A stretch of DNA of 64,000 nt, taken from NCBI GenBank assembly GCA_037447605.1, contig CM074821.1, forward strand, positions 1,240,001 to 1,304,000, read 5' to 3'. The translations under genes and the position numbers were made by a program. Source of the stretch: Zygnema circumcarinatum SAG 698-1b. Taxonomy: Eukaryota; Plantae; Zygnematophyceae. The notes under the pieces are model-generated. The model saw only the letters and a list, made by a program, of their open reading frames with translations. It searched no databases and was not told the origin of the DNA. Shown piece by piece: positions 548-64,000 of the stretch (position 1 is its first letter; each line of letters begins with the position of its first letter).

Positions 548-549
548 TA

Positions 550-9314: not shown

Positions 9315-24778
<15,464 letters not shown>

Positions 24779-24878: not shown

Positions 24879-24906
24879 GTAACAAAAGTTATACGAAGAA
24901 GCGTAC

Positions 24907-26428
24907 CTTATTCTCTTCACAAACTTGAAGTAAGTCTGGTCCCTCGCTCTCGTGTAAATGGACCCTGCGAATAATTGTTGCATCACTCCTCCGCATCTCA
25001 TCAAGCCGAAGCCTTCTTTTAATCGGAGCATCGAAAACTGTGATGGGGAGGCCGGGATTCGAGCGGTTCCATGCCGCCCACCCAGTCATGAAAGTAGACA
25101 TGTCAATGGTCGGAAATTCCCTGCAAATCGCCACGAATAGCGCACCGAATGTGAGTGGTAGTTCTCTCTCTCTATCTCTCTCCTCTAACTCCATATCACT
25201 GTCTCTCTCTCTCTCTCACTCACTGACTATACTTAAATATCTCTCCCCCCCTTGCTCTCCCCCTCTCTCCTATCTCACGCCTCTCCCCGCTTCCACACTC
25301 CACCCCCCAAGTTCTCTCTCTCTTTTCTTTATCTCCTTACCTCTCTCTCTCTATCTCTCACCCACACTCTCTTAATCTCTCTCACCCCCTTGCGCTTCCC
25401 CCCTCCAGTCTCTCTCCCTTCCTATCTCTCCCTCACAGAGGTCACCCCCACCTCCGTAGACGCCAATAATCGAGATATTGCCCGATATTGTTCACAACAC
25501 TCTTCCCGTTTTTGCTCTCTTCCGGAGGAACATAAACTTCAGTGTCGACGACGAGGATGCGATGCAGAGCCATGGCCTCCCCCGCCATGCAGGCCAAGCT
25601 CCGCCGCCGCTGCCCAAAGCCCACTTCAAATTCCTTCCGAGCTCTCGGATAGAGGAGATATTTCTGCTCCGAATCAAACTCATACTCTCCTTTCCAGCTC
25701 CTCCACCACATTGCATATGGAGAAGGGGGAGGTCGTTGTATAAGAGAATCCATGGCTGCCACCTCTCTCTGCTCGATATCTCCCTCACTTCCTTGTTCAG
25801 TGCCCTCTCCCTCTTCCAACATATTCATCTCCTTCTCGAGGTTTTGGCTCTTCCACTTCTTCTCAGAAGAAGCCATGGATTCATTTAGAAATATTCGTTC
25901 TCCATCTCCCTCTCTTTCGATGACTCCCACTACTGCGTCCCTCTCCCTTTCTCTGCTTGTCTCCCTTCCCCCCTCCCCTCTGCTTCCCACCTCCCCTTCC
26001 CCCTCCTCCTCGCCCCCATACTCCCCCATTTCAAACTCCCCCACCTCCTTCACCGTTCCTTCCTCCCTCCCTTCCTCACCTCCATTCTCCTCTTTGCTGA
26101 GCAACCATACTCCTCCTCCCCACCGCTTTCCACTCCTTCCCCAATATCTCACTTTCCTCCCTTCTTCACCCTCCCTCCTCCTTCTCCCCTGGCCATCCCC
26201 CTCCTCTCCCCCCTCCCTCGCCCTCCTCCAGCTCTCCTGCAGAAGCTTCAGGTGCCCCCCCAATCCCTCCCCCATCCCCCCACCCCCCTTCCCCGCCCCC
26301 CAAAGAGCGGGCAGGCTCCCCGGCAGCAGCAAGAGGTGCGCCCCCGCCAGCAACACTATTGCCGCCATCGCCGCCATGGCCGCTACCCAGCCCTGCCCCT
26401 GCCCCCGGCCCTGCCCGTCCCCGGCCAT
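24907..26428 (-). CDS. SUB1/At4g12700-like O-fucosyltransferase-family (GT-B) type II membrane protein, copy L; 3'-partial
   Basis: Exons 26428-25452 and 25120-24907 (phase-consistent). N-terminal TM segment AAMAAMAAIVLLAGAHLLLL and G/E-rich stem. FDSEQKYLLY..SLACMAGEAMALHRILVVD..YLDY matches the SUB1-family KYL.Y..CALGEA.YLNRTLVMD..FYFDF pattern (from memory). Remainder is in the gap. Confidence 0.72.
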
Positions 26429-26930
26429 GGCGGCACCTTCGCCCGCCGGGCACCGTCCTCCTCGGACTCACCCAGACGTGCCGTAAAACGATAGATAAAA
26501 CTTAATTCGTCTATACTACAAGATAATTTCTTCTTTGAGGGAGCGTGAGCGAGAGCGGGAGCAGGAGTGGCAGTGAGTGTATCCAGAACGGGACTGAGTG
26601 AGTCCCAACCCTCCCTCCCTCCCTCCCTCCCTCTTATTCCTGCCTCCTGCCTCCCCTATCTCCCTCCCTCCCTCCATTTTCAGCAGCTCTTGCCCGCCCC
26701 CTTGTCAGTACCCGCCCGCCCTCCGCTCACTTTGCCCCCCCGCCGGCCCGTGCAGCTGTGCCGTACGGTACTCGCCCTCCCTGCCTGCCTGACTGCGAGA
26801 GGTGCCGCCGCCCGCTTACCGCCTGCCCGGTTCGTTCCGACGGGGAAGGGGACCCGCTGGCGGCGGGGGGGAGGGAGGGAGGGAGGGAGGGAGAGAGGGA
26901 GGGACAGAGGGAGGGAGAGTGAAGGGGACG

Positions 26931-28650
26931 GGCCGGCGGGACAGAACCAAAGGTCGCCGCAAAACGGGACGCGGGGCGACCGTACTGTTTTGGAGCTTTA
27001 ATATGTACGGACGCTTTGTAAGACCATAAGGATCCGATTCGGGTGCTCGGAGTGGCCGGTCGGGATGGGACCACCGACGGCTGCGCAGGCGTGATTGGCC
27101 CGTGAAGGCGACTAGGGACAAAATGTCGGCATTGACATTTGTCATTTTGTGGAGCTTTAGGAGACCGGAACGTACAGAAGATGTGAAAGGATACGGAAAA
27201 TCGGTCGCTGTCACACGTGTCGTCCGAACAGTGGCTGGCTGTCACGTCACATTTGGGGAGATTTTTTTGACGTCCAAAATTTCAGTCGTAATTGGGCCAA
27301 GGGCGGCGGTCCGTTAGGACGCGCTCCGTCAATGAGGCCTTGCCAAGCGTCAAAGTATGGGCCGCCGCCAGTTACGCCCGTACGTAAAATGCGCCCTCAC
27401 GGAATTCTTGACGCACAGCGGCTCCGTGGAACCCTTCCTTGAAAACCGAGCTCGTAAAAAATCCGTCCATATGACGTAATAATAATGTACGCCACTCCAT
27501 CTGGCGATTCATGATTTGACAAACACTACCACACAAAATGAATTATTACAAAGAAATCACTGTATTGTACCGAATCTTTGTCACGTGGACATATTTTAAA
27601 CGACAAGTCGCAAATTGCCGGACAACTGACAACTTCGAGACTATGCATGGCCTTCCAGGCTGGACAAACGTGTCGGTTCGGTTTTACTTTGTCGTGAAAT
27701 CCAGCTCGCACCGACATATTGCTGTACCACTGACAGAAAATAATCATTACATAAAATGAATATAATGACTTACACAGCTGGCACAAGAGAGTTGGCCGAA
27801 CCCACGGAATTTTCGGGCAAAAAAAAAAAAAGAAATCCCCCCAGGTGTGATGTGACAGGCATGCTTTTTTGAACCTGCGGCCGCGGGCCACTGTTCGGAC
27901 GACACGGGTGACAGCGACTATTTCAGCGTATCCATTTCACCTTCCGGCAAACGCCACGTCGTCGCAGCTCGCCCGATTGGCTCTTTCAGATCGTGGTTTC
28001 GTACATTTTCTGTTAGTTCGTACTATAGGTCCGTATGTATCGAACGCGAAAATATAATACGCCGTATAATACGTGCGTATTATACGATTTTTCAAAAAAA
28101 GTGTATTTTATAATGTATTTAACGTATTTTCTTTTGATTTCTCGCTAATTGAACGGAGATTGATTATAGGCCAACTAGCAACTCAACATGTGCGACAGGC
28201 CACGGGTGTGACACTTGTGGACCGTACAGTTTCGTACCCAGTTCCCGTACAGAAATTTCGTACGACTCTATGTCCGGATGTACGGGTGTTAACAGTTGCG
28301 TTTGGGTTTTATACAGTGTATAATACTGTATTATACATTATACATATTGTATCGAACCTCAAAGCCGTGACGATGTTTGATTTTGTATAGAACGGACCTA
28401 TAGTTCGTACGTTTCGGCCTCTACAAAGCTCCACAAATGACAAAAAAACGATGCCGACATTTTGTCGCAATCGTCCCCAAGAGCCAATCACGCCTGCGCA
28501 CGCGGTCGGTGGTCCCATCTCGACCGGCCAATCTGGCACCCGAATCGGATCTTTATGGTCCCGGAAGGTTTTCGTACATTTAGAAGCTCCAAAACAGTAC
28601 GGTCTCCCCGCGTCCCGTTTTGCGGCGACCCTCGTCCTGTCCCGCCGGGC
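26931..28650. repeat. ~250-bp imperfect inverted repeat pair in the left FucT-GALT intergenic region
   Basis: 26931-27177 vs reverse complement of 28402-28650: shared GCCGGCGGGACAG..GTCGCCGCAAAACGGGACGCGGG..CCGTACTGTTTTGGAGCTT..GATCCGATTCGGGTG..GCGCAGGCGTGATTGGC..GACAAAATGTCGGCAT. Confidence 0.8.
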
Positions 28651-29450
28651 CCGGCCCCGCCGGCGGGGAGCGGCCCATCGTCACCCCGGGGGAGGCAAAA
28701 TCAGCGGCGGGCGGGCAGGCGTGGCTGGAAAGGAAGGGAGGGAGAGAGGGAGGGAGAAAGGGAAGGGAGAGAGGGAGAGAAAGAGGGAGGCGAAGAGGGA
28801 GGGAAGGAAAGAGGGAGGGAGGGAAAAAGGGAGAGAGAAAGAGAGAGGGAGGGAGGGAAAGAGGGAGGGAGGGAGGGAAAGAGGAAGGAAGGAAGGAAAA
28901 GAGGGAGGGAGGGGAAGAGGGAGGGACGGGAAGAGGGAGGGACGGGAAGAGGGAGGGAGGGGTTAGAGGGAGGGAGGGGAAGAGAGAGGGGGGAAAGAGG
29001 GCGAGAGGGAAAGAGGGAGGGAGGGAAAGAGGGAGGGAGGGAAGAAAGGGAGGGAGGGAAGGAAGGGAGGGAGGGAGGGAGGGAGCGAGGGAGGGAAAGA
29101 GGGAGGGAGCGAGGGAGGAAGGTAGGGAGAGAGAGAGGGAGGGAGGAGGATCTATCAATCTTTATGAACCTTGAAAGAATAAGCATCGAAGCATTGATAA
29201 TCGTTATTCACCTTCTACTTGAGCCTGTTATCTGTGAAAAATATTCCGAAATTGTCTCATATATCCAGAATTTCCACGATCTTGTGCACATAGGCGGTCT
29301 TCCATGCAAACGCTTAGCCATTCCCTTACATCCTTCATTTAAAAAATCAGTACTCCGCTAGCTGAAATCCTCCACAAGCTAAGCTTGCTCTGCTTCTTTA
29401 GCTTCCAACAAATTTCAGAATCAGACCTATCAGCCGAATTCTCGGTGAGG

Positions 29451-31977
29451 ATGGTGCTAAAAAGTAAATTCCCACAGATTTGCGGTTTTACTGTCAACCT
29501 TTTCTCTTCTATCCTTCTCATTGTCTCGGCCGCCTCCGGGGCCTTCGCTTTACAAATAAGGTTAGTGAACTCAGAAAGAAACTTTCCCCGATGTTGTTGC
29601 TTGTTAACGCTCGTTGATGATGGAGGAGCCCAAAGAGATTTTTAAAGAGCTTCAAGAGCGTGACTGGCGTCACTTGACGCGTTTGAGGTCAGATAGCACT
29701 GCACAGGGAGAAAACGTACACTTCTGAATGTTCTTAAAAAAAACCGACTACATCAATCTACCATACATATGAGTCACACGGCAGTCAATTCCTCTCTCTT
29801 ACTCTCTCTCTCTCACTCTCCCTCCCTCTCCCTCTTCCTTTTCCTCTCCCTCTCCCTCTCCCTCTCCCTCTCCCTTTTCCTCTCCCTCTCCCTCTCCCTC
29901 TCCCACTCCCTCTCCCNNNNNNNNNNCCTCTCCCTCTCCCTCTCCCTCTCCTTCCCCCTCTCCCACTTCTTCTTCTTCTCTATCTCCCTCTCCCTCACTC
30001 TCTCCCTCGCCCCCTCTCCCTCGCTCTCTCCCACTCCCTCTCCCTCTCCCTCTCCCTCTCCTTCCCCTCTTCCCTCGCCCTCGCCCTCGCCCTCGCCCTC
30101 GCCCTCGCCCTCGCCCTCGCTCTCGTCCTCTCCCTCGCTCGCTCTCCTCCCCTCCCTCCCTTATTCTCTCTCTCTCCCTCTCTCTCTCCCCCTCCTCTTC
30201 TCTTTTCTCTGTCACTTTCTTTCTCTCACTCTCTTGCTCTCTCCCCCCCCAACTCCCTCCCTGTCTCCCCCCTCCCCTTTCTCTGACAAGTCACCGCTGC
30301 TTTTCCGACCTGTGCAGTGCGAGTGACCCCAGCCCATTACGAGCTTCCAATCTGCCCAATGCCGTGCCCGTGCCTGTGCCTGTGCTCGCCGCGAGTGAGA
30401 AGGCCCCAAAGAGAGCGGAGGGCGGCGAGGCGGCCAAAGGGGCGCAGGAGGGCGGCGCTCCCCCGCTGGCCATCGACGCCCTTGCGGCGCAGGCGGGGGC
30501 GTTGGGGGCCGCCGCCATCAAGGAGGCGGAGGAGGAGCGGGCGATGCTGGCGGCGCGAGGGGAGGTCTGGGACCGACACGCGCTCGCGGCGGACGAGAAG
30601 CTCGACCTCTGCCAGCAGGCCATGGTGCTCTCCAGGGCGGACCTTCAGGCGGCGGAGGGAGGGGTGCCGCTGCCTTGCGGACTGGCTAAGGGCTCGTCTT
30701 TCACTTTCACGGGGCTCATCTCAAGAAAACGAAAAGACGAGGGGGGAGAAGTGGGCTTCACTTTGGACCTGAAGGTGAGGACACTGCGGAGTTTTATGTG
30801 CCTCGTTCTTCAGATTTGCTGTAATGCATGCACAGTCTTTAAATGCTCAATCATGTAAAGAAATCAAGATTTGTGATGCATGCACAGTCGTAGGATGCTC
30901 AGCATGCGGCTCGACATGCTTTTCCAATGCATGCATGTATGCATGCATGCACTGAGGCTGTGCCTGACATGCTTCCATGGGGGGCTGCCTGCCTGCCTGC
31001 CTGCCTCAGGGTCTGCCTCTTGTGGAGGGCGAGTCCCCCCCCGTGATCCTGCGCCTTCGCGCGGTGCTGCGTGGCGGGGGGGCCGCCATAGAAGGCAACG
31101 CCATGGCTTCTTCTTCTTCTTCTTCTTCTCCTTCTTCTTCTTCTGCGGCCGGCGGCGATGATGGGCGGTGGGGCGCTGCGCAGCGCTGCGAGGGAACCGC
31201 CTCGGACGACGAAACGGCCAAGGGTGGGTCTCATGCCGCCCAACATGGTTCATGGTTGTGGCAGTGTCTTGTGGGGTGCTAGCGTGCGCTTCTAGAGCAT
31301 GAGCATGAGAACAATATTGGGGATAAGGTTAGATGTGACAACAACAAGGGTGTGGTAAAGTGCCGTCAGGCCTTGTTCTGATGTCTTATACGAAATGAAG
31401 GGAGAAGGGATATGGGAGAACATGACGCTGGGTCGGACAATTCGACGAGCTTCCCTGGACAAGGCCACTTCATATTAGGCGGCGCAGGGGCTTCTCTATG
31501 GCAGCACCGTCTGAAATTAGGGTTTGAGTTGCACGGGTGGAGGCGCGTGTTGTGTTCTCCTTCACAGCTGGTAGTAGTGAGCGAAGTTGAAAGACAGGCG
31601 AATGGTGCCTTACTTTCGCGTCCTTAGTGCGACATGTTTCCCATAGTGCGACATGCTGCCCATAGTGCGCCGTTTGTGCGTACATGCGATGTGGGGCAAA
31701 AACGATGATCCCCGTAGTGCGACGTCCATGCGACGAATGACTTGTGATCACGTTGCACTCTGGAGACCGCGTCCTCGTGGTTCCCCTTGATGATGGTTGT
31801 TTCCATGTACATTTGATGGCATCATCGCCATCGTGAGATCAATGCCACTTCCTAAACAAACATCCTGAACAGCATGTTCTTATCCTTTTATCTTGCCCTT
31901 AAGAGTATGTTCTTGTTTTTAATCTCCTAGAAACCCTAACCCTAATATCTGAATTTGTGCCCTCCCACCCCCCCTCC

Positions 31978-32011
<34 letters not shown>

Positions 32012-33434
32012 NNNNNNNNNNGTCTGGGACCGACACGCGCTCGCGGCGGACGAGAAGCTCGACCTCTGCCAGCAGGCCATGGTGCTCTCCAGGGCGGACC
32101 TTCAGGCGGCGGAGGGAGGGGTGCCGCTGCCTTGCGGACTGGCTAAGGGCTCGTCTTTCACTTTCACGGGGCTCATCTCAAGAAAACGAAAAGACGAGGG
32201 GGGAGAAGTGGGCTTCACTTTGGACCTGAAGGTGAGGACACTGCGGAGTTTTATGTGCCTCGTTCTTCAGATTTGCTGTAATGCATGCACAGTCTTTAAA
32301 TGCTCAATCATGTAAAGAAATCAAGATTTGTGATGCATGCACAGTCGTAGGATGCTCAGCATGCGGCTCGACATGCTTTTCCAATGCATGCATGTATGCA
32401 TGCATGCACTGAGGCTGTGCCTGACATGCTTCCATGGGGGGCTGCCTGCCTGCCTGCCTGCCTCAGGGTCTGCCTCTTGTGGAGGGCGAGTCCCCCCCCG
32501 TGATCCTGCGCCTTCGCGCGGTGCTGCGTGGCGGGGGGGCCGCCATAGAAGGCAACGCCATGGCTTCTTCTTCTTCTTCTTCTTCTCCTTCTTCTTCTTC
32601 TGCGGCCGGCGGCGATGATGGGCGGTGGGGCGCTGCGCAGCGCTGCGAGGGAACCGCCTCGGACGACGAAACGGCCAAGGGTGGGTCTCATGCCGCCCAA
32701 CATGGTTCATGGTTGTGGCAGTGTCTTGTGGGGTGCTAGCGTGCGCTTCTAGAGCATGAGCATGAGAACAATATTGGGGATAAGGTTAGATGTGACAACA
32801 ACAAGGGTGTGGTAAAGTGCCGTCAGGCCTTGTTCTGATGTCTTATACGAAATGAAGGGAGAAGGGATATGGGAGAACATGACGCTGGGTCGGACAATTC
32901 GACGAGCTTCCCTGGACAAGGCCACTTCATATTAGGCGGCGCAGGGGCTTCTCTATGGCAGCACCGTCTGAAATTAGGGTTTGAGTTGCACGGGTGGAGG
33001 CGCGTGTTGTGTTCTCCTTCACAGCTGGTAGTAGTGAGCGAAGTTGAAAGACAGGCGAATGGTGCCTTACTTTCGCGTCCTTAGTGCGACATGTTTCCCA
33101 TAGTGCGACATGCTGCCCATAGTGCGCCGTTTGTGCGTACATGCGATGTGGGGCAAAAACGATGATCCCCGTAGTGCGACGTCCATGCGACGAATGACTT
33201 GTGATCACGTTGCACTCTGGAGACCGCGTCCTCGTGGTTCCCCTTGATGATGGTTGTTTCCATGTACATTTGATGGCATCATCGCCATCGTGAGATCAAT
33301 GCCACTTCCTAAACAAACATCCTGAACAGCATGTTCTTATCCTTTTATCTTGCCCTTAAGAGTATGTTCTTGTTTTTAATCTCCTAGAAACCCTAACCCT
33401 AATATCTGAATTTGTGCCCCCCCCCCCCCCCCTC

Positions 33435-33486
<52 letters not shown>

Positions 33487-35687
33487 GCATGCATCCCTTG
33501 CAGTGGACGGTCTGCCGCAGTGCGAGGGCTGGGCGCGAGCCGACGCCTTCAAGGGGAAGCCCTCCGCGTGGGTGCAGCGCTCGGCCCGCAGCAGCGCGCC
33601 TCTGGGCCTGTTCCCGCTGCGCGCCGACCGCGCCTTCGTGCTCACTCTGCGCGCGGGCTTCCAAGGCTTCCATGTCTCCGTCGACGGCCTGCACGTCCTC
33701 TCCTTCCCGTACCGCGCAGTCAGTCTTTCACACAAACCTGCATCAAATGTTGATTGAGCTCTTCCAATTCAGATAACAGACATGGATATCTAGCGTTACT
33801 TCAGAAGCGGGCGTTCATGCTCAATTGACCTTCACAAAGCAATCGCTTGCAGGGCTATGTTACGGAGGAGGCTGCAAGCCTTCACTACGACGGCGACATC
33901 GTTTTTTCCTCTCTGATTGGAGTGTCCCTTCCGCTGCATCCTCCTGTGAAACGGGCAACGCCTTTACAGTCAGATCACCTCAAGGCCCCTCCCCTCAAGG
34001 AGGGCCCCTCGGAGCTTTTCATTGGCATTCTCTCGGCGAGCACCTACTTTGACGCGCGCAGGGCGGTGCGGGAAACATGGATGCAATATCCTTTGATTCG
34101 CTCGGGAGATGTTACTGCACGCTTCTTTATCGGCTTGGTAAGATCCAGTCTGCAATAGACTTCAGGATTTCTTCCGTGAGTGGTGTGAGTGATTCTGATG
34201 TTCCTGAATTAAGCAGAGCAGCTTGACACGTGGGCGATATCATTGTATGTCGAATGTATTGTATTTTGAATGCATAGTCATATTTTTTAGTAGAACTAGA
34301 TAGTAATAGACCCCCTTAGCAACTGTGATTGCGCTTATATTGCATATTTAGTGCTTGATTTTGGTGGAATATCGCGATGTCTGGAGGGCAACAGCATTCC
34401 AGCAAACAGGTCAATGTGGAGACCCTAAAGGAGAGGGAGTACTTCCAAGACATGGTGGTGCTGCCCTTCATCGATAACTACGACTTGGTGGTTTTAAAGA
34501 GCTATGCACTCTGCGAATGGGCTGTAAGTTCTTTCTCAAAAGCAGCATTCCTTTTTGCTTGACTTCATCAGGGAGGCGATGATGGGATCACTGATGCTGC
34601 AGGAAAGTGTTACAGATGATGTTTCGTTACATTTCAGTTAGATCATTGACCTGCAGCTTGCCGCAGGAAGTTCTGCACCTGCACGTGCAAGTTATAAGAG
34701 AACTCATGCATGGTTCTGCATGTAAAGGATTTCAGCTTTCCCTCTGTGCAGAGCTTTCATACTTCAAATTCCTGAACTTGGAGATGTAACCCTCCCATAT
34801 TTTAGCTCCTTATGTTTACCCCCCCCCCAATTGTTCAAACGATGCCTGCAGTTGGAGCACACGCAAGCGAAGTACGTCATCAAGGTCGATGATGACAATT
34901 TCGTGCACTTAGATCGCGTTCTTGAGAACATAAAATATGTGAATTTCAAGAACAGTCTTTACATGGGCAACATGAACAGGGGGCACTACCCGCAGCGTGA
35001 AGGGAAATGGGCAGTCACATTGGAGGTGAGGGGCAACTTTTAGGGTTTCCTGGGTCATCTTTTTGCTCCTTTGTATATTTTAGGGGTCTCGGTTGTGATT
35101 TTGAAGTGTCGCGCTTTTGAAGTAGCCTTCATTTCTTCTGATTTCGTTTCTTCAAATATTGAGATTGTTGGAGCTTTGGGATGCAGGAGTGGCCGAACAA
35201 GCCCTACCCTCCCTATGCGAACGGGCCGGGATACATTCTCAGTCGAGACATAGTCGAATTCATAGTTCGCTTGAAAAAGAGGGACCAATTACGGGTACTT
35301 TTCGCTTGCCTCCTCCTCTTGACTCCTTCAGAAAACACTCATTGGTTTTCCACCCTTGTCTGTTCTCCAGTTTATGAGCCGCTTATTCTTGTTACATGCG
35401 TGAAGATATGACTGCAACAGCTTTGATAGAAGCCTGAAAAGGGTTTGTATGGTTTTTAATGGGTCCCTTTTTTATGGTCTTTGCAGATCCACAAAATGGA
35501 AGATGTGACAGTCGGCATGTGGGTGGTGCAATACAGCATCAACCAAACTGTAAATTACGTTCACAACTGGCGGTTCTGCCAGTTCGGCTGCATGGAAAAC
35601 TTCATCACAGCTCACTACCAGAACCCGCGCCGGATGCTCTGCTTATGGGAGAAGGTGCAGCAAGGAGACGAGAGCTGCTGCGACTAA
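29451..35687 (+). CDS. GALT: Galectin-domain GT31 galactosyltransferase (Hyp-O-galactosyltransferase GALT2-6-like), copy L, 9 exons, 630 aa
   Basis: Exons 29451-29560, 30318-30774, 31010-31223, 33504-33718, 33853-34137, 34395-34523, 34852-35025, 35187-35294, 35487-35687 (1893 nt, phase-consistent once the 1457-bp gap-flanking duplicate is ignored). Signal anchor, [86 protein letters not shown]...TAHYQ.PR.M.CLW. Confidence 0.93.
30565..33480. other. Apparent 1457-bp direct duplication across a 10-N gap (probable unmerged contig overlap)
   Basis: 30565-32011 is repeated at 32022-~33468. ORF translations are identical in the track, and both units end in a (CT)n tract beside the gap. Confidence 0.75.
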
Positions 35688-35775
35688 GAACCCTAAAACC
35701 CTAAAAACCTTAATACCCTAAAAACCCTTAAAACCTAAAACCCTAAATTTCTAAAAACCCTAAAATCCCTAAATA
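35688..35775. repeat. Interstitial telomere-like repeat (CCCTAAA/CCCTAAAA variants) directly after the GALT stop codon
   Basis: AACCCTAAAACCCTAAAAACCTTAATACCCTAAAAACCCTTAAAACCTAAAACCCTAAA... Absent at the equivalent site of copy R (52361-52350). Confidence 0.85.
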
Positions 35776-40730: not shown

Positions 40731-40799
40731 GTGAGCCTTGACCAGCTCGCCGTCTGTTCTTCTTACGCTTCTAGCTTGCAAGATCTGCGGGTGTTGCGG

Positions 40800-50268: not shown

Positions 50269-50476
50269 CCCACCCTCCTCTCTCCTCATAATGTTTGGAT
50301 GCATGCCAGAGCACAGTGGAACGATAGTGGCTCCCCAATTGTCAGTTTTAAGAACATCATAGGCTTGGGACAATATATGTGCATTTTTTTTGCGCAGTAC
50401 ATGTTACAGCAACCCTGTCGACTCCTAAATTTAGAAACTCTAGATTCAAGACCGGAAAAGCTTGAGCCTTTTGCAG

Positions 50477-52358: not shown

Positions 52359-54539
52359 TTAGTCGCAGCAGCTCTCGTCTCCTTGCTGCACCTTCTCCCA
52401 TAAGCAGAGCATCCGGCGCGGGTTCTGGTAGTGAGCTGTAATGAAGTTTTCCATGCAGCCGAACTGGCAGAACCGCCAGTTGTGAACGTAATTTACAGTT
52501 TGGTTGATGCTGTATTGCACCACCCATATGCCAACTGTCACATCTTCCATTTTGTAGATCTGCAAAGACCATAAAAAAAGGACCCATTTCAGGCTTCTAT
52601 CAAAGCTGTTGCAGTCATATCTTTACACATGTAACAAGAATAAGCGGCTGATAAACTGGAGAACTGAAAAGGGTGGAAAACCAACGAGTGTTTTCAGAAG
52701 GAGTCAAGAGGAGGAGGCAAGCGAAAAGTACCCGTAATTGGTCCATCTTTTTCAAGCGAACTATGAATTCCACTATGTCTCGACTGAGAATGTATCCCGG
52801 CCCGTTCGCATAGGGAGGGTAGGGCTTGTTCGGCCACTCCTGCATCCCAAAGCTCCAACAATCTCAACATTTGACGAAAAGAAATCCGAAGAAATAAACG
52901 CTACAAAAATCACAACCGAGACCCCTAAAATATACAGAGCAGCAAAAAGTTGACCCAGGAAACCCTAAAAGAATATGTCTGCAAGCCCCCCCTCACCTCC
53001 AGTGTGACTGCCCATTTCCCTTCACGCTGCGGATAGTGCCCCCTGTTGATGTTGCCCATGTAAAGACTGTTCTTGAAATTCACATATTTTATGTTCTCAA
53101 GAACGCGATCTAAGTGCACGAAATTGTCATCATCGACCTTGATGACGTACTTCGCTTGCGTGTGCTCCAACTGCAGGCATCGTTTGAACAAGAGGGGGGG
53201 GGGGGGGGGTAAAACATAAAGAGGAGCTAAAATATGGGAGGGTTACATCTCCAAGTTCAGGAATTTGAAGTATGAAAGCTCCGCACTGAGGGAAAGCTGA
53301 AATCCTTTACATGCAGAACCATGCATGAGTTCTCTTATAACTTGCACCTGCAGGTGCAGAACTTCCTGCGTCAAGCTGCAGGCCAATGACCTAGCTGAAA
53401 TGTAACGAAACATCATCTGTAACACTTTACTGCAGCATCAGTGATCCCATCATCGCGTCCTTGATGAAGTCACGCAAAAAGGAATGCTGCTTCAGAGAAA
53501 GAACTTACAGCCCATTCGCAGAGCGCATAGCTCTTTAAAACCACCAAGGCGTAGTCATCGATGAACGGCAGCACCACCATGTCTTGGAAGTACTCCCTCT
53601 CCTTTAGGGTCTCCACATTGACCTGTTTGCTGGAATGCTATTGCCCTCCAAACATCGCGATATTCCACCAAAATCAAGCACTAAATATACAATATAAGCG
53701 CAATCACAGTTGCAAGGGGGTCTTTTATTATCTAGTTATACTCAAGAATATGACTATGCATTCAAAATACAATACATTCGACGTACAATGATATCGCCAA
53801 CGTGTCAAGCTGCTCTGCTTCAGGAACATCAGGATCACTCACACGACTCACGGAAGGAATCCTAAAGTCTATTGCAGACTGAATCTTACCAAACCGATAA
53901 AGAAGCGTGCAGTAACATCTCCCGAGCGAATCAAAGGATATTGCATCCATGTTTCCCGCACCGCCATGCGCGCGTCAAAGTAAGTGCTCGCCGAGAGAAT
54001 GCCAATGAAAAGCTCCGAGGGGCCCTCCTTGATGGGAGGGGCCTTGAGGTGATCTGACTGTAAAGGAGTTGCCCTTTCCGCAGGAGGGTGCAGCGGAAGG
54101 GACACTCCAACCAAAGAGGAAAAAACGATGTCCCCGTCGTAGTGAAAGCTCGCAGCCTCCTCCGTAACATAGCCCTGCAAGCGATTGCTTTGTGAAGGTC
54201 AATTGAGCATGAACGCCCGCTTCTGAAGTAACGCTAGATATCCATGTCTGTTATCTGAATTGGAAGAGCTCAATCAACATTTGATGCAGGTTTGTGTGAA
54301 AGACTGACTGCGCGGTACGGGAAGGAGAGGACGTGCAGGCCGTCGACGGAGACATGGAAGCCTTGGAAGCCCGCGCGCAGAGTGAGCACGAAGGCGCGGT
54401 CGGCGCGCAGCGGGAACAGGCCCAGAGGCGCGCTGCTGCGGGCCGAGCGCTGCACCCACGCGGAGGGCTTCCCCTTGAAGGCGTCGGCTCGCGCCCAGCC
54501 CTCGCACTGCGGCAGACCGTCCACTGCAATGGATGCATG

Positions 54540-54586
<47 letters not shown>

Positions 54587-55832
54587 GGGGGAGGGGGGGG
54601 GGGGNNNNNNNNNNTGCATGAGTTCTCTTATAACTTGCACCTGCAGGTGCAGAACTTCCTGCGTCAAGCTGCAGGCCAATGACCTAGCTGAAATGTAACG
54701 AAACATCATCTGTAACACTTTACTGCAGCATCAGTGATCCCATCATCGCGTCCTTGATGAAGTCACGCAAAAAGGAATGCTGCTTCAGAGAAAGAACTTA
54801 CAGCCCATTCGCAGAGCGCATAGCTCTTTAAAACCACCAAGGCGTAGTCATCGATGAACGGCAGCACCACCATGTCTTGGAAGTACTCCCTCTCCTTTAG
54901 GGTCTCCACATTGACCTGTTTGCTGGAATGCTATTGCCCTCCAAACATCGCGATATTCCACCAAAATCAAGCACTAAATATACAATATAAGCGCAATCAC
55001 AGTTGCAAGGGGGTCTTTTATTATCTAGTTATACTCAAGAATATGACTATGCATTCAAAATACAATACATTCGACGTACAATGATATCGCCAACGTGTCA
55101 AGCTGCTCTGCTTCAGGAACATCAGGATCACTCACACGACTCACGGAAGGAATCCTAAAGTCTATTGCAGACTGAATCTTACCAAACCGATAAAGAAGCG
55201 TGCAGTAACATCTCCCGAGCGAATCAAAGGATATTGCATCCATGTTTCCCGCACCGCCATGCGCGCGTCAAAGTAAGTGCTCGCCGAGAGAATGCCAATG
55301 AAAAGCTCCGAGGGGCCCTCCTTGATGGGAGGGGCCTTGAGGTGATCTGACTGTAAAGGAGTTGCCCTTTCCGCAGGAGGGTGCAGCGGAAGGGACACTC
55401 CAACCAAAGAGGAAAAAACGATGTCCCCGTCGTAGTGAAAGCTCGCAGCCTCCTCCGTAACATAGCCCTGCAAGCGATTGCTTTGTGAAGGTCAATTGAG
55501 CATGAACGCCCGCTTCTGAAGTAACGCTAGATATCCATGTCTGTTATCTGAATTGGAAGAGCTCAATCAACATTTGATGCAGGTTTGTGTGAAAGACTGA
55601 CTGCGCGGTACGGGAAGGAGAGGACGTGCAGGCCGTCGACGGAGACATGGAAGCCTTGGAAGCCCGCGCGCAGAGTGAGCACGAAGGCGCGGTCGGCGCG
55701 CAGCGGGAACAGGCCCAGAGGCGCGCTGCTGCGGGCCGAGCGCTGCACCCACGCGGAGGGCTTCCCCTTGAAGGCGTCGGCTCGCGCCCAGCCCTCGCAC
55801 TGCGGCAGACCGTCCACTGCAATGGATGCATG

Positions 55833-55879
<47 letters not shown>

Positions 55880-58800
55880 GGGGGAGGGGGGGGGGGGAGG
55901 GCACAAATTCAGATATTAGAATAGGGGTTTTTGGAGGTTAAAAACAAGAACATACTCTGAAGGGCAAGTAGAAAGGATAAGAACATGCTGTTCAGGATGT
56001 TTGTTTAGGATGCGGCATTGATCTCACGATGGCGATGATGCCATCAAATGTACATGGAAAAAACCATCATCAAGGGGAACCACGAGCACGCGGTCTCCAG
56101 AGTGCAACGTGATCGCAAGTCATTCGTCGCATGGACGTCGCACTATGGGGATCATAGTTTTTGTCCCACATCGCATGTACGCACAAACGTCGCACTATGG
56201 GCAGCATGTCGCACCATGGACGCGAAAGTAAGGCACCAGTCGCATGTCTTTCAACTTCGCTCACTACTACCAGCTGTGAAGGAGAACAGAACACGCGCCT
56301 CCAGCCGTGCATATCAAACCCTAGTTTCAGACGGTGCTGCCATAGAGAAGCCGAGCGGCATGAGACCCACCCTTGGCCGTTTCGTCGTCCGAGGCGGTTC
56401 CCTCGCAGCGCTGCGCAGCGCCCCACCGCCCATCATCGCCGCCGGCCGCAGAAGAAGAAGAAGGAGAAGAATAAGAAGAAGAAGAAGAAGAAAAAGTGGA
56501 AGACATGGCGTTACATTCTATGGCGCCCCCCTCACTGCGCAGCACCGCGCGAAGGCGCAGGATCACGGGGGGGGACTCGCCCTCCCCAATTGGCAGACCC
56601 TGAGGCAGGCAGGCAGGCAGGCAGCCCCCCATGGAAGCGTGTCAGGCACAGCCTCAGTGCATGCAAGCATGCATGCATTGGAAAAGCATGTCGAGCCACA
56701 TGCTGAGCATCCTACGACTGTGCATGCATCACAATTTTTTATTTCTTACCATACTTGAGCTTCTAAATTCTGTGCGTGCATTACAGAAAATCTGAAGAAG
56801 AAGGCACATAAAACTCCGCAGTGTCCTCACCTTCAGGTCCAAAGTAAAGCCCACTTCATCATTTCCATTTCTTGAGATGAGCCCCGTGAAAGTGAAAGAC
56901 GAGCCCTTAGCCAGTCCGCAAGGCAGCGGCACCCCTCCCTCCGCCGCCTGAAGGTCCGCCCTGGAGAGCACCATGGCCTGCTGGCAGAGGTCGAGCTTCT
57001 CGTCCGCCGCGAGCGCGTGTCGGTCCCAGACCTCCCCTCGCGCCGCCAGCATCGCCCGCTCCTCCTCCGCCTCCTTGATGGCGGCGGCCCCCAACGCCCC
57101 CGCCTGCGCCGCAAGGGCGTCGATAGCCAGCGGGGGAGCGCCGCCCTCCTGCGCCCCTTTGGCCGCCTCGCCGCCCTCCGCTCTCTTTGGGGCCTTCTCA
57201 CTCGCGGCGAGCACAGGCACAGGCACGGGCACGGCATTGGGCAGATTGGAAGCTCGTAATGGGCTGGGGTCACTCGCACTGCACAGTTCGGAAAAGCAGC
57301 GGTGACTTGTCAGAGAAAGGGGAGGGGGGAGACAGGGAGGGAGTTGGGGGGGGAGAGAGCAAGAGAGTGAGAGAAAGAAAGTGACAGAGAAAAGAGAAGA
57401 GGAGGGGGAGAGAGAGAGGGAGAGAGAGAGAATAAGGGAGGGAGGGGAGGAGAGCGAGCGAGGGAGAGGACGAGAGCGAGGGCGAGGGCGAGGGCGAGGG
57501 GGATGGGGAGGGGGAGGGGGAGCGGGAGGGGGAGGGCGAGGGAGGAGGGGAAGGAGAGGGAGAGGGAGAGGGAGAGAGAGCGAGGGCGAGGGGGCGAGGG
57601 AGAGAGAGAGTGAGAGGGAGATAACGAAAAAGAGGGAGAGGGAGAGAGAGAGGGAGAGGGAGAGGGAGAGGGAGAGAGAGCGAGGGCGAGGGAGAGAGAG
57701 AGGGAGAGGGAGATAAAGAAGAAGAGGGAGAGGGAGATAAAGAAGAAGAGGGAGAGGGAGATAAAGAAGAAGAGGGAGAGGGAGAGAGAGATGGAGAGGG
57801 CGAGGGAGAGGGAGATGGAGAGGGAGAGGGAGAGAAAGAGGGAGAGGGAGAAAGAGAAGAAGAGGGAGATGGAGAGGGAGAGGGAGAGGAGAGGGAGAGG
57901 AGAGGAGAGGGAGAGGAGAGGAGGGGGAGAGGAGAGGGAGAGGAGAGGAGAGGGAGAGGGAGAGGAGAGGGAGAGGGAGAGGGAGAGGGAGAGGGAGAGG
58001 GAGAGGAGAGGGAGAGGGAGAGGGAGAGGGAGGGAGGGGGGAGGGGAGGGGAGGGAGAGGGAGAGGAGAGGAGAGGGAGAGGAGAGGGAACGGGAGAGGG
58101 AGAGGGAGGAGAGGGAGAGGGAGAGGGAGAGGAGAGGAGGAGGGAGAGGGAGAGGGAGAGGAGAGTGGCAGTGGAGAGGGAGAGGGAGAGTATAGTGAAG
58201 GAGGGAGAGGGAGAGGAGAGGAGAGGAGAGGGAGAGGGAGTGGAGCGGAGGGGAGGGGAGAGGGAGAGGGAGAGGGAGAGGGAGAGGAGAGGAACGGGAG
58301 AGGGAGAGGGAGAGGGAGAGAGGAGAGGAGAGGGAGAGGGAGAGGGAGAGGGGTGGGAGGAGGAGAGGAGAGGAGAGGGAGAGGGAGGTAAGCGAGGGGA
58401 GAGGGAGAGGGAGAGGAGGGAGAGGGAGAGGAGAGGGAGAGAGAGGGAGAGGGAGAGGAGAGGGAGAGGAGAGGAGAGGGAGGGAGGGGAGGAGAAAGAG
58501 GGAGAGGAGAGGGAGAGGAGAGGGAGAGGGAGAGGGAGAGGAGAGGGAGAGGGAGGGGAGGGAGGGAGTGGGAGGGGAGAGAGGGAGAGGAGAGGGAGAG
58601 GGAGAGGAGAGGAAACCGGGAGAGGGAGAGGGAGAGGGGAGGAGGAGAGGAGAGGGAGAGGGAGAGGGAGAGGGAGAGGAGAGGGAGAGGGAGAGGGAGG
58701 GGGAGCGGAGGGGGAGAGGGAGAGGGAGAGGAGAGGGAGAGGGAGAGGGAGAGGGAGAGGGAGGAGAGGAGAGGAGGGAGAGGGAGAGGGAGAGGGAGGA

Positions 58801-59668
58801 GGGAGAGGAGAGGGAGAGGGAGGAAAGAGGGAGGGAGGGAGAGGAGAGGAGAGGGAGAGGGAGAGGGAGAGGAGAGGGAGGGAGGAGAGGGAGTGGGAGT
58901 GGGAGGGGAGGGGAGTGGAGAGGGAGAGGAGAGGGAGAGGGAGAGGAGAGGAACGGAGAGGGAGAGGGAGAGGAGAGGGAGAGGGAGAGGAGAGGGAGAG
59001 GGAGAGGGAGAGGGAGGAGGGAGAGGAGAGGGAGGGGGGAGCGGAGGGGGAGAGGGAGAGGAGAGGGAGAGGGAGAGGAGAGGGAGAGGGAGAGGAGAGG
59101 GAGAGGGAGAGTGGAGAGTGGAGAGGGAGAGGGAGAGGGGGAGAGGAGAGGGAGAGGAGGAGAGGGAGAGGGAGAGGGAGAGGGAGGGAGAGGAGAGGGA
59201 GAGGGAGAGGGAGAGGGAGAGTGAGGAGGAGTGGAGAGGGAGAGGGAGAGGGAGAGGAGAGGGAGGTGTAGAGGAGAGGGAGAGGGAGAGAGAGTGAGAT
59301 TGAGGGAGAGTGAGAGAGAGGAAGGGACTGCCATGTGACTCATATGAATGGTAGACGAATGTAGTCGGTTTTCTTTAGAACATTCAGAAGTGGAACGTTT
59401 TTTCCCTCTCCATGGAAAAAACCGTCTGACCTCAAACGCGTCAATTGACGCCAGTAACGCTCTTGAAGCTCTTTACAATGTCTCTTTGAGCGCCTCCATC
59501 ATCAACGAGCGTTAACAAGCAACAACATCGGGGAAAGTTTCTTTCTGAGTTCACTGACCTTATTTGTGAAGCGGAGGCCCCGGAGGCGGCCGAGACAATG
59601 AGAAGGATAGAAGTGAAAAGGTTGACAGTAAAACCGCAAATCTGTGGGAATTTACTTTTTAGCACCAT
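52359..59668 (-). CDS. GALT: Galectin-domain GT31 galactosyltransferase, copy R
   Basis: Same 9-exon layout as copy L (exon 1 59668-59559, exon 2 57278-56831, last exon ends TAA at 52359). DDD motif is intact and no stops were seen in exons. Differences from L include [12 protein letters not shown] vs [12 protein letters not shown] and GNINRG vs GNMNRG. Confidence 0.92.
53322..55897. other. Apparent 1293-bp direct duplication across a 10-N gap (probable unmerged contig overlap)
   Basis: 53322-54604 is repeated at 54615-~55897. Translations are identical, and the units end in a GA/poly-G tract next to the gap. Confidence 0.75.
57320..59335. repeat. ~2-kb (GAGAGG)n-type homopurine tract in intron 1 of GALT copy R
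   Basis: Near purine-only on the plus strand. The equivalent tract in copy L (29790-30270) is only ~0.5 kb as assembled. Confidence 0.92.
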
Positions 59669-59955
59669 CCTCACCGAGAATTCGGCTGACAGGTCTGATT
59701 CTGAAATTTGATGGAAGCTAAAGAAGCAGAGCAGGCTTGGCTTGTGGAGGATTTCGGCTAGCGGAGTACTGATTTAATTACTGATAGATGTAAGGGAATG
59801 GCTAAGCTTCTGGATGAAGGAGCGTCTTTGTGTACAAAATCGTGGAAATTCCGAAAATATGAGACAATTTCTGAATTTTTTTTCACAGATAACTTGCTCA
59901 AGTAGAGGGTGAATCAGGATAATCAATGCTTCTTTGACCTTTCAAGGTTTGTAAA

Positions 59956-59982
59956 GATAGACAGATAGATAGATAGATAGAC

Positions 59983-60058
<76 letters not shown>

Positions 60059-60074
60059 GGATAGATAGATAGAT
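59956..60074. repeat. (GATA)n microsatellite upstream of GALT copy R
   Basis: ~120 bp of GATA/GACA units. Copy L has only ATCTATCAATCT at the matching site (~29150). Confidence 0.95.
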
Positions 60075-61037
60075 ATAATTTACTTCGTCTATACAAAAAG
60101 GTAATTTCTTCTTTGAGGGAGCGAGAGCGGGAGCGGCAGTGCCTGCCTGCCCGCCTCCTTCTCCACGCAAGTCCTCCCTTCGCTAATTTCGCCCCCCCGG
60201 CGACACGAGGGGCCGCCGTCCGCCGCCCGGGGGAGGGCGGGGCGGGCTCTGACACGTGGCCGCGGCATGGCCGTGGTATTTCCGTACGAAGGGCGTACGG
60301 AAATGATGTCGCCAAAAAGTCGGTGGCCGCGCCGGCGGCTGCCGCGGCCGACTTTTAAGGACGCTGGCGCCTGCCGGCCGGCATCCCAAGCTTCCAGCTG
60401 GCATCTTATGTCTTTGAGACCGACATTTTGACCCACCGACCTCCTTTAGCCAATCACGACCCTTCTTTTTTGCCACGACTCTTCTTTTCTTTTCTTTCTG
60501 ACAAAGTCCGTTGACCATTCAAATACCAGAATCGGATCTTTAGAGTCCGTACATACCAAATGTCCCAAAACAGTACCGCTTCCCCCCGGCCCGTTTTGCG
60601 GTAACGCGTGTCCGGTCCTGCCGGTGGGCGGCAGGACCTCGCGCAGGCTGGCAGCCAGAGCGAGGACCGTACGGTGCCGTACAGCTGCAGGTGGAGGCTT
60701 GGAGCAAGGAGGCCCGCGAAGTACAGTAAACGAAGTCAACGAGGGCGTGCGTTGACCAGGGGGCGGGCAGGCGCTGCTGGAAAGGGAGGGAGGGAGGGAG
60801 GGAGGGAGAGAGAGAGAGAGACCAGGAGCCGCCGCCCGACAGCCGGGCCGGGCCGGGTTGGGAATCATCCAGTCCCGGTCTGGCTAGACTCACTGCCGCT
60901 CCCGCTCCCGCTCTCGCACTCGCTCCCTCAAAGAAGGAATTATCTTTTAGTATAGACGAAGTAAGTTTTATCTATCGTTGTACGGCACGTCGGGGTGAGT
61001 CCGAGGAGGACGGAGCCCGGCGGGCGAAGCTGTTCCC

Positions 61038-63938
61038 ATGGCCGGGGACGGGCAGGGCCGGGGGCAGGGGCTGTGCTGGGTGGCGGCCATGGCGGCCATG
61101 GCGGCAATCACGGCCATGGTGGCGATAGTGGTGCTGACGGGGGCACACCTCCTGCTGATGCCGGGGAGCCTGCCCGCACTCTGGGGGGCGAGAAAAGGGG
61201 GGGGGGGGGTGGGGGAGGGATTGGCGGGGCAGCTGAAGCTGCTGCAGGAGAGCTGGATGAGGGCGAGGGAGGGGGAAGAGGGGGGGGGAGGCCAGGGGGG
61301 AAGGGGGAAAGAGGATGAAGGAGGGAGAAAAGTGAGAAATTGGGGAGGAAGGAGGGGAAAGCGGTGGGGAAGAGGAGGAGTATGGTTGGTCAGCAAAGAG
61401 AAAAAAGGAGGTGAGGGAGAGGGGGAGGAAGGAACGGTGAAGGAGGTGAGGGGATTTGATATGGGGGAGTATGGGGGAGAGGAGGAGGGGGAGGGGGAGG
61501 GGGAGGTGGAGGTGGGGAGCAGAGGGGAGGGGGAAAGGGAGGCAAGGGAAAGTGAGAGGGACGCAGTAGTGGGAGGCAGCGAAAGAGAGGGAGATGGAGA
61601 ACGAATATCTCTCAATGAATCCATGGCTGCTTCTGAGAAGAAGTGGAAGAGCCAAAATCTCGAGAAGGAGATGAATATGTTGGAAGAGGGAGAGGGCACT
61701 GAACAAGGAAGTGAGGGAGATATCGAGCAGAGAGAGGTGGCAGCCATGGATTCTATTATACAACGGCCTCCCCCTTCTCCATATGCAATGTGGTGGAGGA
61801 GCTGGAAAGGAGAGTATGAGTTTGATTCGGAGCAGAAATATCTCCTCTATCCGAGAACTCGGAAGGAATTTGAAGTGGGCGTTGGGCAGCGGCGGCGGAG
61901 CTTGGCCTGCATGGCGGGGGAGGCCATGGCTCTGCATCGCATCCTCGTCGTCGACACCGAAGTTTATGTTCCTCCGGAAGAGAGCAAAAACGGGACGAGT
62001 GTGGTGAACGATATCGGGCAATATCTCGATTATTGGCGTCTACGGAGGTGGGGTTGATCTCTGTGAGGGAGAAATAGGAAGGGAGAGAGACTGGAGGGGG
62101 GAAGCGCAAGGGGGGGGGAGAGATTCAGAGAGAGCGGATGAGAGAGAAAGAGAGAGAGGTAAGGAGTTAAAGAACTTGGGGGGTGGAGTATGGAAAAGGG
62201 AAAAGGCGTGAGATAGGAGAGAGGGGGAGAGCAAGGGGGGGAGATATATTTAAGGATAGTCAGTGAGTGAGAGAGAGAGTGAGACGGAGATATGGAGTTA
62301 GAGGAGAGAGAAGAGAGAGAGAGAACTTCCACTCACATTCTGTGCGTTATTCGTGGCGATTTGCAGGGAATTTCCCACCATTGACATGTCTACTTTCATG
62401 ACTGGGTGGGCGGCATGGAACCGCTCGAATCCCGACCACCCCATCACATTTTTCGATGCTCCGATTGAAAGAAGACTGCCGCTTGATGAGATGCGAAGGA
62501 GTGATGCAACAATTATTCGCAGGGTCCACTTAAACGAGAGCGAGGGACCGGACTTACTTCAAGTTTGTGAAGAGAACAAGGTTCGCTTTCTCGTAATACT
62601 TTTGTTATGACTTAGTATCTGTCTCATGAAGTCTACTTGTTATTATTACCGTTCAAAGTATTCGGCTCGTTTCATCCTTTCAGGACTGGTACTTACTTCG
62701 TCCTCTCTAGTAGTGCAAAATTATTTGAATAATGTTTTTGCATTGTTTTTGATGATACGGATCAGGAAATTGAAAGGCCGGTAGATGCTGTCAGATATGC
62801 CCCTCTCCTGGTGAAGGTGGCGGAAAAAATCCGCGGCTTGTTGCCGCAACACTTTGTGTCGGTGAGGGTGGAGANNNNNNNNNNGGGAGAGGGAGAGGGA
62901 GAGGGAGAGGGAGAGGGAGAGGGAGATCTCCTCTCACTTGTCTGCATTTCCCCCCTCCATCTCATTTTCCTTATTTCCTAACACTCTGCTGATGGTTTTC
63001 ATTCTTGTTGGCTTTTCTTTTGGGTTTTATTTGTTTTCCATTTTAACCTCCTGAGCAAGGATTCGACATATTCAAGTGAATCCATTGCTTGCTGCTTTAT
63101 CCTCCCACAGTTACTTGTGCTCTCGTGATTGTCTCCTCACACTCTCTACTCCTCCCATTTGTGCACGTTCCTTTCCACACTCTCCACTTTCACGGATTGG
63201 AAATTGGAAGGATAAAAAATAAGGTAAAGCAAGAGAGAGAGAGAGAGGTAGAGGGTGAGGGAGAGAGGGTGAGGGAGAGAAGAGTGGAAGTGAGAAAGAG
63301 AGAAAAGAGAGAGAGTGAGAGAGAGTAGTAGTTCATGCATATAGACGATCTCCAGCGGAGAAGCCGTACACCCCACTGCCTTCTATTCCTCGTCAGCTCC
63401 TTCCAATTCTCTCCCCTCCTCTCCCTCTTTCTCTCTCGCTCTCCATGCGTCTCTCCCTTCTCTCCTTCCATATAACATCTTTGCCTGCAGCAAGTAGCAA
63501 TTAGAAGCACGCTTTGACATGTTTCAGTTTGCTGGCAGCCCTTTGACGAAAAAAAAATAGGAATAGTGGGGTAAATCACAACGCTGGAGAGAGAGAGAGA
63601 GAGAGAGTAGGAGAGAGAAAGGGAAGCGGGAATTACTTATGAGTTAAGCTTAGCATCTCTAACAATATCGTGGTTATTCTGTCCTGTCATTGATTTTTGT
63701 TGTGCTATCTTGCAGCATATCGCATGTACTGGCCCAAAAAGGAGTTGCTCCTAAAGCGACAGTGTGGATAATTACAGACGAGAACGACCCCGACTTCTTT
63801 TTTAAGCTGAAGGGACTCTATGCATGCAAGTTTCTGGACGACTTTTCGAAGCTGTGGGAGTCGCACAGTCAGTGGTGGATCGACATGAGGGAGATATGCG
63901 GAGAGGGCTGCAGGCCCGCCATGGATGGCTTCATGCGG
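61038..63938 (+). CDS. SUB1/At4g12700-like O-fucosyltransferase-family protein, copy R; runs off the window end
   Basis: Exons 61038-62047, 62367-62580, 62766-62861 and 63716-63938. The last encodes VWIITDENDPDFFFKLKGLY..KFLDDFSKLWESHSQWW..DGFMR, matching the SUB1-family YIATNEP..FF..LK..Y..FLD.FK.LW..S.W..FDGYMR motif (from memory). A short exon with the H..RGD catalytic motif is missing, probably in the 62875 gap. Confidence 0.8.
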
Positions 63939-64000
63939 GTCAGCTTGCTTGACTTCATTGCTCTATTCTCTCTATCGGTTAAGCTTTTAAAACACCCTTT

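Follow-up and report, generated by a model that had tools for sequence, protein, structure and literature searches.

Architecture of the locus

The window analysed here is a 64,000-nucleotide (nt) stretch of contig CM074821.1 from the zygnematophyte alga Zygnema circumcarinatum SAG 698-1b, and the findings below concern its positions 24879-64000, where genes for putative glycan-modifying membrane proteins lie together. A sequence-only reading had described this part as seven genes from four unrelated families, namely three fucosyltransferase-like (FucT-like), two hydroxyproline galactosyltransferase (Hyp-GALT), one WbsX-type glycosyltransferase (GT) and one FkbM methyltransferase gene, that would jointly build a methylated deoxyhexose-capped galactan. 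The window consists of eukaryotic DNA in which the genes are spliced and long CT/GA microsatellites occur, and the following features were located (window positions; strand given where one applies):

24880-36645: arm A of an inverted duplication, holding a head-to-head pair of FucT-like A (minus strand) and GALT A (plus strand)
24892-26428, minus strand: FucT-like A (DUF7075), exon 1 at 26428-25445 (anchor and low-complexity stem), exon 2 at about 25158-24958, cut by the gap 24779-24878
26924-28658: foldback/transposon-like insertion, resembling a miniature inverted-repeat transposable element, between the GALT and FucT-like genes of arm A; inverted arms 26924-27179 and 28404-28658 (83-86%)
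29451-35684, plus strand: GALT A, galectin plus GT31 galactosyltransferase by Pfam, including the artefactual repeat 32022-33469
32022-33469: assembly artefact repeating 30565-32011 across the 10-N gap 32012-32021 (99.7% over 1448 nt, directly at the gap)
38463-40730, plus strand: FucT-like C (DUF7075), exon 1 to about 39224, exon 2 at 40506-40727, followed by the GA array and a 100-N gap
40798-41762: GA array and scaffold gap, (GGAGAGAGAGGG)n of 865 nt found by Tandem Repeats Finder, then a 100-N gap; right flank unique
43478-47873, plus strand: WbsX-family (PF14307) type II membrane protein gene, with Pfam matches on three exons, RNA, and 3' coverage to about 48300
50466-50648, plus strand: FkbM-like (Methyltransf_21) C-terminal-like fragment of about 60 residues, by language-model similarity
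51380-62607: arm B, reverse-orientation mate of arm A by self-blastn
52359-59668, minus strand: GALT B, galectin plus GT31 paralog mirroring the GALT A exons, including the artefactual repeat 54615-55897
54615-55897: assembly artefact repeating 53322-54604 across the 10-N gap 54605-54614 (100% over 1283 nt)
61038-64000, plus strand: FucT-like B (DUF7075), exons 61038-62054, about 62362-62600, about 62750-62862, about 63325-63420 and about 63700-63960; it leaves the window end

Comparison of the window with itself revealed that 24880-36645 and 62607-51380 form an 11.7-kb inverted segmental duplication, the arms of which flank a unique core (36646-51379) and are 88-94% identical overall, against 96-100% in the exons. 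One segment of at least 11.7 kb, carrying the GALT/DUF7075 pair, has been copied, with a synonymous divergence (dS) of about 0.05-0.1. The ratio of nonsynonymous to synonymous divergence (dN/dS) was 0.24 between GALT A and GALT B (dS 0.053) and 0.39-0.53 between FucT-like A and B (0.39 in the DUF7075 core). In arm B, the start of FucT-like B lies 1369 nt from that of GALT B and the two genes diverge from this shared upstream region of 1.4 kb. The foldback element of arm A, composed of 255-nt inverted arms and a nested inverted repeat, accounts for about 1.7 kb without a counterpart in arm B and was therefore inserted after the duplication. That the arms represent two haplotypes of one locus is unlikely, as their 6-12% divergence and their dS seem high for alleles, and the vegetative stage of streptophyte algae is haploid. 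A foldback sequencing artefact was rejected, since it would have given near-identical arms.

GALT exons appeared twice because overlapping contig ends at 32012 and 54605 had been left unmerged; the artefact in arm B doubled three GALT B exons, for which duplicate exon open reading frames (ORFs) were seen. Two 100-N gaps (24779-24878 and 41663-41762) delimit a 16.8-kb contig (24879-41662), which comprises arm A together with part of the core and which starts and ends within truncated DUF7075 genes, copies A and C. At the join at 41663, the GA array on the left meets unique DNA on the right, and continuity cannot be shown from sequence. The gaps at 29917 and 62875 lie inside introns, in CT/GA repeats, the latter directly after a GTGAGG splice donor. 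At gap 50119, RNA contigs from two runs follow the window only as far as 50116, after which they have up to 127 nt found nowhere in it, and therefore either sequence is missing at this gap or the transcript is joined to something absent. The CT/GA microsatellites, on the kilobase scale at 57300-59400 and 40798-41662, are intronic and coincide with most of the assembly gaps; they also gave many spurious long ORFs of up to 881 amino acids. The stretch 41763-64000 contains only 10-N gaps (one overlap, one intronic, one with missing sequence), and within it the WbsX, GT31 and DUF7075 genes are adjacent, three non-homologous enzyme genes. Given the duplication, the artefacts and the unverified placement of the 16.8-kb contig, the independent adjacency at the locus is therefore that of these three genes on one contig. 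The earlier count of seven genes was inflated by one inverted duplication and two gap artefacts; three of the four families (GALT, DUF7075 and WbsX) are solid and FkbM is present as a fragment.

Enzyme families encoded at the locus

GALT A has the domains of plant GALT enzymes. A candidate first exon (29451-29564) encodes a membrane anchor and ends in an AAG|GTTAGT donor, and coding blocks within the further exons lie, with approximate limits, at 30400-30789, 33560-33730, 33829-34143, 34386-34520, 34858-35022, 35181-35285 and 35493-35684. The exon at 33500-33754, N-terminal to the catalytic domain and identical in arm B, matched Gal-bind_lectin (PF00337) with 28.1 bits at a cut-off of 22.1. 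Galactosyl_T (PF01762) was matched collinearly over four exons (profile positions 2-30, 29-84, 79-126 and 135-170, that is, 2-170 of 195), two of which were above the cut-off by themselves. In GALT B, the first intron holds a CT/GA microsatellite of about 2 kb. Among the Arabidopsis enzymes of this kind, GALT2-6 are Hyp-O-galactosyltransferases, and GALT1 makes the Lewis-a epitope on N-glycans and has no Hyp-GALT activity (PMC4687291). Because GALT1 has the same architecture, priming of Hyp-galactan is not implied by it: the two genes are of plant GALT type by Pfam, as the sequence-only reading had stated, and their assignment as Hyp-GALT goes further than the domains do.

The three FucT-like genes belong to one family. 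FucT-like B is the only copy with the C-terminal half and contains nearly the whole domain; one of its late exons matched DUF7075 (PF23272) with 23.0 bits, exactly the cut-off, and the 5' exons of the FucT-like genes were not recognised by Pfam. With a local hidden Markov model (HMM) of the family, copy B matched positions 200-276, 279-331, 344-382 and 411-483 with the exons in order, while copy A matched only 199-276 and 279-330 and copy C only 201-277 and 273-343 before a 100-N gap followed, in agreement with tblastn using family proteins. In copies A and C the second conserved exon is thus the last one present, and each gene breaks off right at a 100-N gap; neither tblastn nor the family HMM found 3' exons of either copy beyond either gap in either orientation. 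The ORF at 42611-42970, tried as the lost 3' part of copy C, was rejected as it had no match to the family HMM. In the conserved block common to the three copies, A and B are 95% identical, whereas C is 47% identical to B and is therefore an older paralog. The claim of three FucT-like genes stands in that there are three DUF7075 genes, two of which are truncated.

A profile built from this block found only 14 relatives among 1.84 billion proteins. The sources of seven of them were looked up and all were zygnematophyte (Mesotaenium, Closterium, Spirogloea or a transcriptome). DUF7075 was present in all ten relatives scanned, three of which also gave a sub-threshold O-FucT match. In the family alignment, the homologs keep the classic fucosyltransferase motifs, of the types VHVRRGDK, IATDE and TFNDLT; a fucosyltransferase superfamily with three motifs has been described (PMC3522684). 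The window copies have diverged, with several family-invariant residues changed: copy B has IITDE where the family has IATDE and, read by eye, VVHAYRRSP where the family has VHVRRGD, and its last motif lies beyond the window. The AlphaFold model of a Mesotaenium homolog, P0002 (mean predicted local distance difference test score, pLDDT, 68.7), had only fucosyltransferases as its top PDB matches (POFUT1, POFUT2, FUT8, NodZ and AtFUT1; E values down to 4e-7), and its matches among the Swiss-Prot models of AFDB were the Arabidopsis rhamnogalacturonan rhamnosyltransferases RRT1 and RRT4, OFUTs and MSR. Judged by the motifs, the DUF7075 matches and this homolog model, rather than by models of the window proteins, the name fucosyltransferase-like is therefore right as a predicted fold (GT-B of the fucosyltransferase type) and does not fix the donor sugar. 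We know of no characterised member of DUF7075 (SUB1-like), and the literature searched did not mention the family.

The WbsX-family gene matched PF14307 on three exons (E values 1.6e-9, 2.5e-19 and 4.4e-25) that together cover positions 8-343 of 350. Its introns (45587-45746 and 46317-47445) have GT..AG borders and were spliced out in RNA contigs of four runs, with high exon depth. At position 45801, the RNA contigs of the four runs were 2 nt shorter than the assembly, with between half and all of the depth showing the difference, which accounts for the apparent frame change in the assembly and is probably an assembly indel or a variant. An ortholog was found on environmental metagenome contigs (L007-L009) with introns of 55-65 nt and the same exon order; that on L007, an ENA metagenome scaffold (positions 1-5078), is about 50-80% identical across the aligned segments and roughly 60% overall. 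One exon of the window gene also gave weak matches to GH99 endo-mannosidases (E values 0.03-0.2), and a GH99-like hydrolase remains a lead at that strength. The WbsX family was named from gene context in bacterial O-antigen clusters, so that glycosyltransferase activity is only a name, and its members may either transfer or cleave sugars. Thus, the gene is an expressed and spliced member of the family, and of the designation WbsX-type GT the last part is nominal.

The FkbM methyltransferase of the sequence-only reading was reduced to the fragment listed above. Apart from its look by eye, the one support for the assignment was that 93 of 100 named language-model hits of this ORF carry Methyltransf_21 (PF05050). 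No match was obtained in Pfam, NCBIfam (TIGR01444) or PDB sequences, even at E values up to 10, and between 36 and 52 kb no frame contains, except in low-complexity sequence, an S-adenosylmethionine (SAM)-binding motif I of the D-x-G-A-x-x-G type. RNA depth over the ORF was 0-1.5 in the four runs. The piece, which lacks the SAM-binding half, is thus either a remnant or a gene broken by the gap 50119-50128, the 5' part of which may lie in the missing sequence.

N-terminal hydrophobic anchors, with 19-residue Kyte-Doolittle means of 2.0-2.6, were present in the three FucT-like proteins (2.33 in A and 2.09 in C), in the WbsX protein (2.12) and in the candidate first exon of GALT, which bears out the earlier observation that the complete 5' ends encode a type II anchor.

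Intervening sequence, expression and relatives

When the 115 non-repetitive ORFs of at least 60 amino acids in the region were searched with Pfam, only Galactosyl_T, Fringe, WbsX and DUF7075 were found, and Rfam gave no match on 24-64 kb. In line with the earlier statement, no unrelated gene is recognisable between the enzyme genes, with sequence missing at the gaps. Three further pieces are transcribed. RNA contigs at 48261-48666 and 49954-50116, one of them 2672 nt long, run into sequence absent from the window, and the two junctions inspected, at 48261 and 48666, have no canonical splice sites. A 220-nt RNA contig, with depths of 454, 146 and 58 in three runs, matches 51061-51268 at about 5% mismatches before it passes into other sequence; it is probably the abundant transcript of a paralogous or repeated element. 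We considered these pieces as a hidden unrelated gene, but their RNA contigs leave the window in this way. The transcribed pieces at 48.2-51.3 kb look like repeats, fragments of paralogs or genes, or the mark of missing assembly, and hidden genes in the missing sequence are possible.

Run X20 contained 0.48 of the sequence words of WbsX, at a depth of about 300, and 0.10 of those of FucT-like B, which was nearly absent. FucT-like B reached 0.69-0.83 of its words in RNA-type runs of three studies. The X20 result makes tight co-expression of WbsX and FucT-like B unlikely.

The arrangement is not shared with the available relatives. At six Closterium loci, which code for the closest DUF7075 proteins available, there was no GT31 or WbsX gene within 10 kb, and the neighbours were unrelated (At4g15545-like, EF-hand, Ctr and CutC). 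On the metagenome scaffold L007, a gene for a KH-domain, poly-Q protein lies 3' of the WbsX ortholog, convergent with it, within the 2.7 kb of 3' flank. Of the findings that the sequence-only reading had named as speaking against its cluster, two are present in part: homologs are scattered in Closterium and on L007, and the adjacency across the gap at 41663 is unverified.

The Closterium loci also have a neighbourhood of their own. On contigs L002-L006 the DUF7075 genes repeatedly adjoin a gene with an At4g15545_C domain, and on L003, L004 and L006 they also have two EF-hand genes and a gene for a Ctr copper transporter downstream. This small neighbourhood is conserved among Closterium strains and differs from that of the window.

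To the left of the locus, the window carries unrelated genes:

3899-4665, minus strand: exons of an EF-Tu-type translational GTPase with a GTP_EFTU_D2 domain, probably eRF3/HBS1-like
9309-24219, plus strand: long, multi-exon gene for a PTM-like chromatin protein with Tudor PTM/DIR17, DDT, WHIM1, PHD, Chromo_PTM and zf-HC5HC2H_2 domains

The chromatin gene forms the left flank and with its 3' end runs up to the 100-N gap at 24779.

Neighbourhood or biosynthetic cluster

With no shared synteny, the contrast in X20 and no intact methyltransferase gene, a duplication-driven neighbourhood is favoured over a pathway cluster. We therefore regard the locus as probably a local neighbourhood of Golgi-type glycan-enzyme genes that arose mainly from segmental duplication, and not as a demonstrated biosynthetic cluster. 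Its core unit would be a head-to-head pair, made of a galectin plus GT31 gene of the GALT1-6 type and a gene for a type II DUF7075 enzyme with a predicted fucosyltransferase fold. This pair was copied as one segment, both copies stayed under purifying selection, and the scaffold between the copies holds the older DUF7075 paralog, the expressed WbsX gene and the remnant or gap-truncated FkbM-like piece. All of these proteins may act on glycans in the secretory pathway. A bidirectional promoter may serve both genes of the GALT/DUF7075 pair, the products of which may act on the same glycoprotein glycan: the GT31 enzyme would add galactose, and the predicted GT-B enzyme either fucose or rhamnose as a deoxyhexose. 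WbsX and the FkbM-like piece, for their part, would be neighbours through history and not through a pathway.

Several points weigh against this interpretation. To find glycan-enzyme genes of three unrelated families on about 20 kb of one contig, with no other recognisable gene, is more than casually expected, and both members of the GALT/DUF7075 pair were kept intact in both copies. The chance expectation is a rough estimate: were 2-3% of genes to code for glycan enzymes, several triplets per genome would be expected. The synteny tests are weak, as the Closterium proteins share about 30-40% identity over the matched block and could be paralogs rather than orthologs, and the evidence from L007 amounts to 2.7 kb on one side of WbsX. 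Finally, RNA-type runs from the same studies (P4-P6) contained both WbsX and FucT-like B.

An alternative is a true co-functional glycan cluster, in which GALT would start or extend a galactan on a glycoprotein, DUF7075 and perhaps WbsX would add fucose or rhamnose, an FkbM enzyme complete in reality and broken by the assembly gap would methylate it, and selection for co-regulation would keep the genes together. In its favour are the adjacency of three families with type II anchors and the divergent GALT/DUF7075 pair, intact in both duplicates around its shared upstream region; furthermore, plant rhamnosyltransferases belong to the same fold family, and the RNA contigs indicate that sequence is missing at gap 50119, a short way 5' of the FkbM-like piece. 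The enzymes that rhamnosylate arabinogalactan-protein glycans and those that methylate the rhamnose are still unknown and must therefore exist somewhere (PMC12209756). However, there was no conserved synteny in the relatives checked (Closterium and L007), X20 contained WbsX strongly and almost no FucT-like B, the FkbM-like piece had an RNA depth of about zero and no SAM motif, the donor-binding motif of FucT-like B has diverged, and WbsX belongs to a family without demonstrated transferase activity and matches GH99 endo-mannosidases weakly in one exon. We consider this cluster unlikely. The specific pathway of the sequence-only reading, a methylated deoxyhexose-capped galactan, found no support, given an FkbM fragment untranscribed in the four runs, a nominal WbsX activity and an architecture that does not imply Hyp priming. 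Some of the genes may still serve a shared pathway, and the likeliest candidates for this are the two members of the GALT/DUF7075 pair with their common 1.4-kb promoter region.

The mirror arrangement could also be partly a product of scaffolding, the contig 24879-41662 being a paralogous piece from elsewhere or in another orientation and the real locus consisting of WbsX, the FkbM-like piece, GALT B and FucT-like B. Genes are cut at both ends of this contig, the flanks of the gap at 41663 are unlike (GA array versus unique DNA), the 3' exons of copies A and C are found past neither gap in either orientation, and unmerged overlaps elsewhere in the locus show a rough assembly. On the other hand, the 88-94% identity indicates that the contig is a real paralogous copy and not arm B assembled twice, and scaffolders usually place contigs by long-range links, so that the contig probably lies nearby. 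A misplaced or misoriented contig appears improbable to us. More generally, clusters that look mirror-symmetric in this assembly combine genuine segmental duplications with contig overlaps left unmerged and with scaffold joins that are unverified.

Beyond the duplication-driven neighbourhood, which we continue to prefer, there is a slim chance that the GALT/DUF7075 pair works as a co-regulated module of two enzymes, one galactosylating Hyp-rich glycoproteins and the other then capping the galactan with rhamnose or fucose, with WbsX as a third processing step. Rhamnose-rich galactan-proteins do occur in zygnematophyte algae (PMC7612518). If the module were real, DUF7075 would be the long-sought enzyme family that attaches the deoxyhexose to rhamnogalactan or arabinogalactan proteins of the algal and bryophyte type. 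Candidates for both the addition and the methylation of rhamnose would have come from a real physical cluster; what can be used from the locus is the divergent GALT and DUF7075 pair, as candidates for consecutive steps, and an expressed eukaryotic WbsX-family gene.

Plant operon-like clusters and tandem glycosyltransferase arrays likewise bring together adjacent non-homologous enzyme genes of one broad process and local duplicates. However, the plant clusters, of which more than 40 have been reported, yield specialised small molecules and are defined through co-expression and genetic evidence (PMC11962460), whereas the arrangement described here is not shared with the available relatives. At the level of single families, the DUF7075 homologs have the motifs and the predicted fold of the fucosyltransferase superfamily (GT65 POFUT1, GT68 POFUT2 and plant GT68, GT23 FUT8, GT37 FUT1 and plant GT106 RRT), from which the window copies have diverged, copy B with an altered first motif. 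The WbsX gene resembles the bacterial family in its strong Pfam match over nearly the whole profile and differs from it in being a eukaryotic gene with spliced introns, the product of which carries a membrane anchor and an additional conserved stretch at its N-terminus, an arrangement also seen in the environmental algal ortholog. The GALT genes have the same order of anchor (a candidate here), Gal-bind_lectin and Galactosyl_T as Arabidopsis GALT1-GALT6 (CAZy family GT31 with an N-terminal galectin domain; PMC4687291), but, unlike these, they are present as two recent paralogs in mirror orientation.

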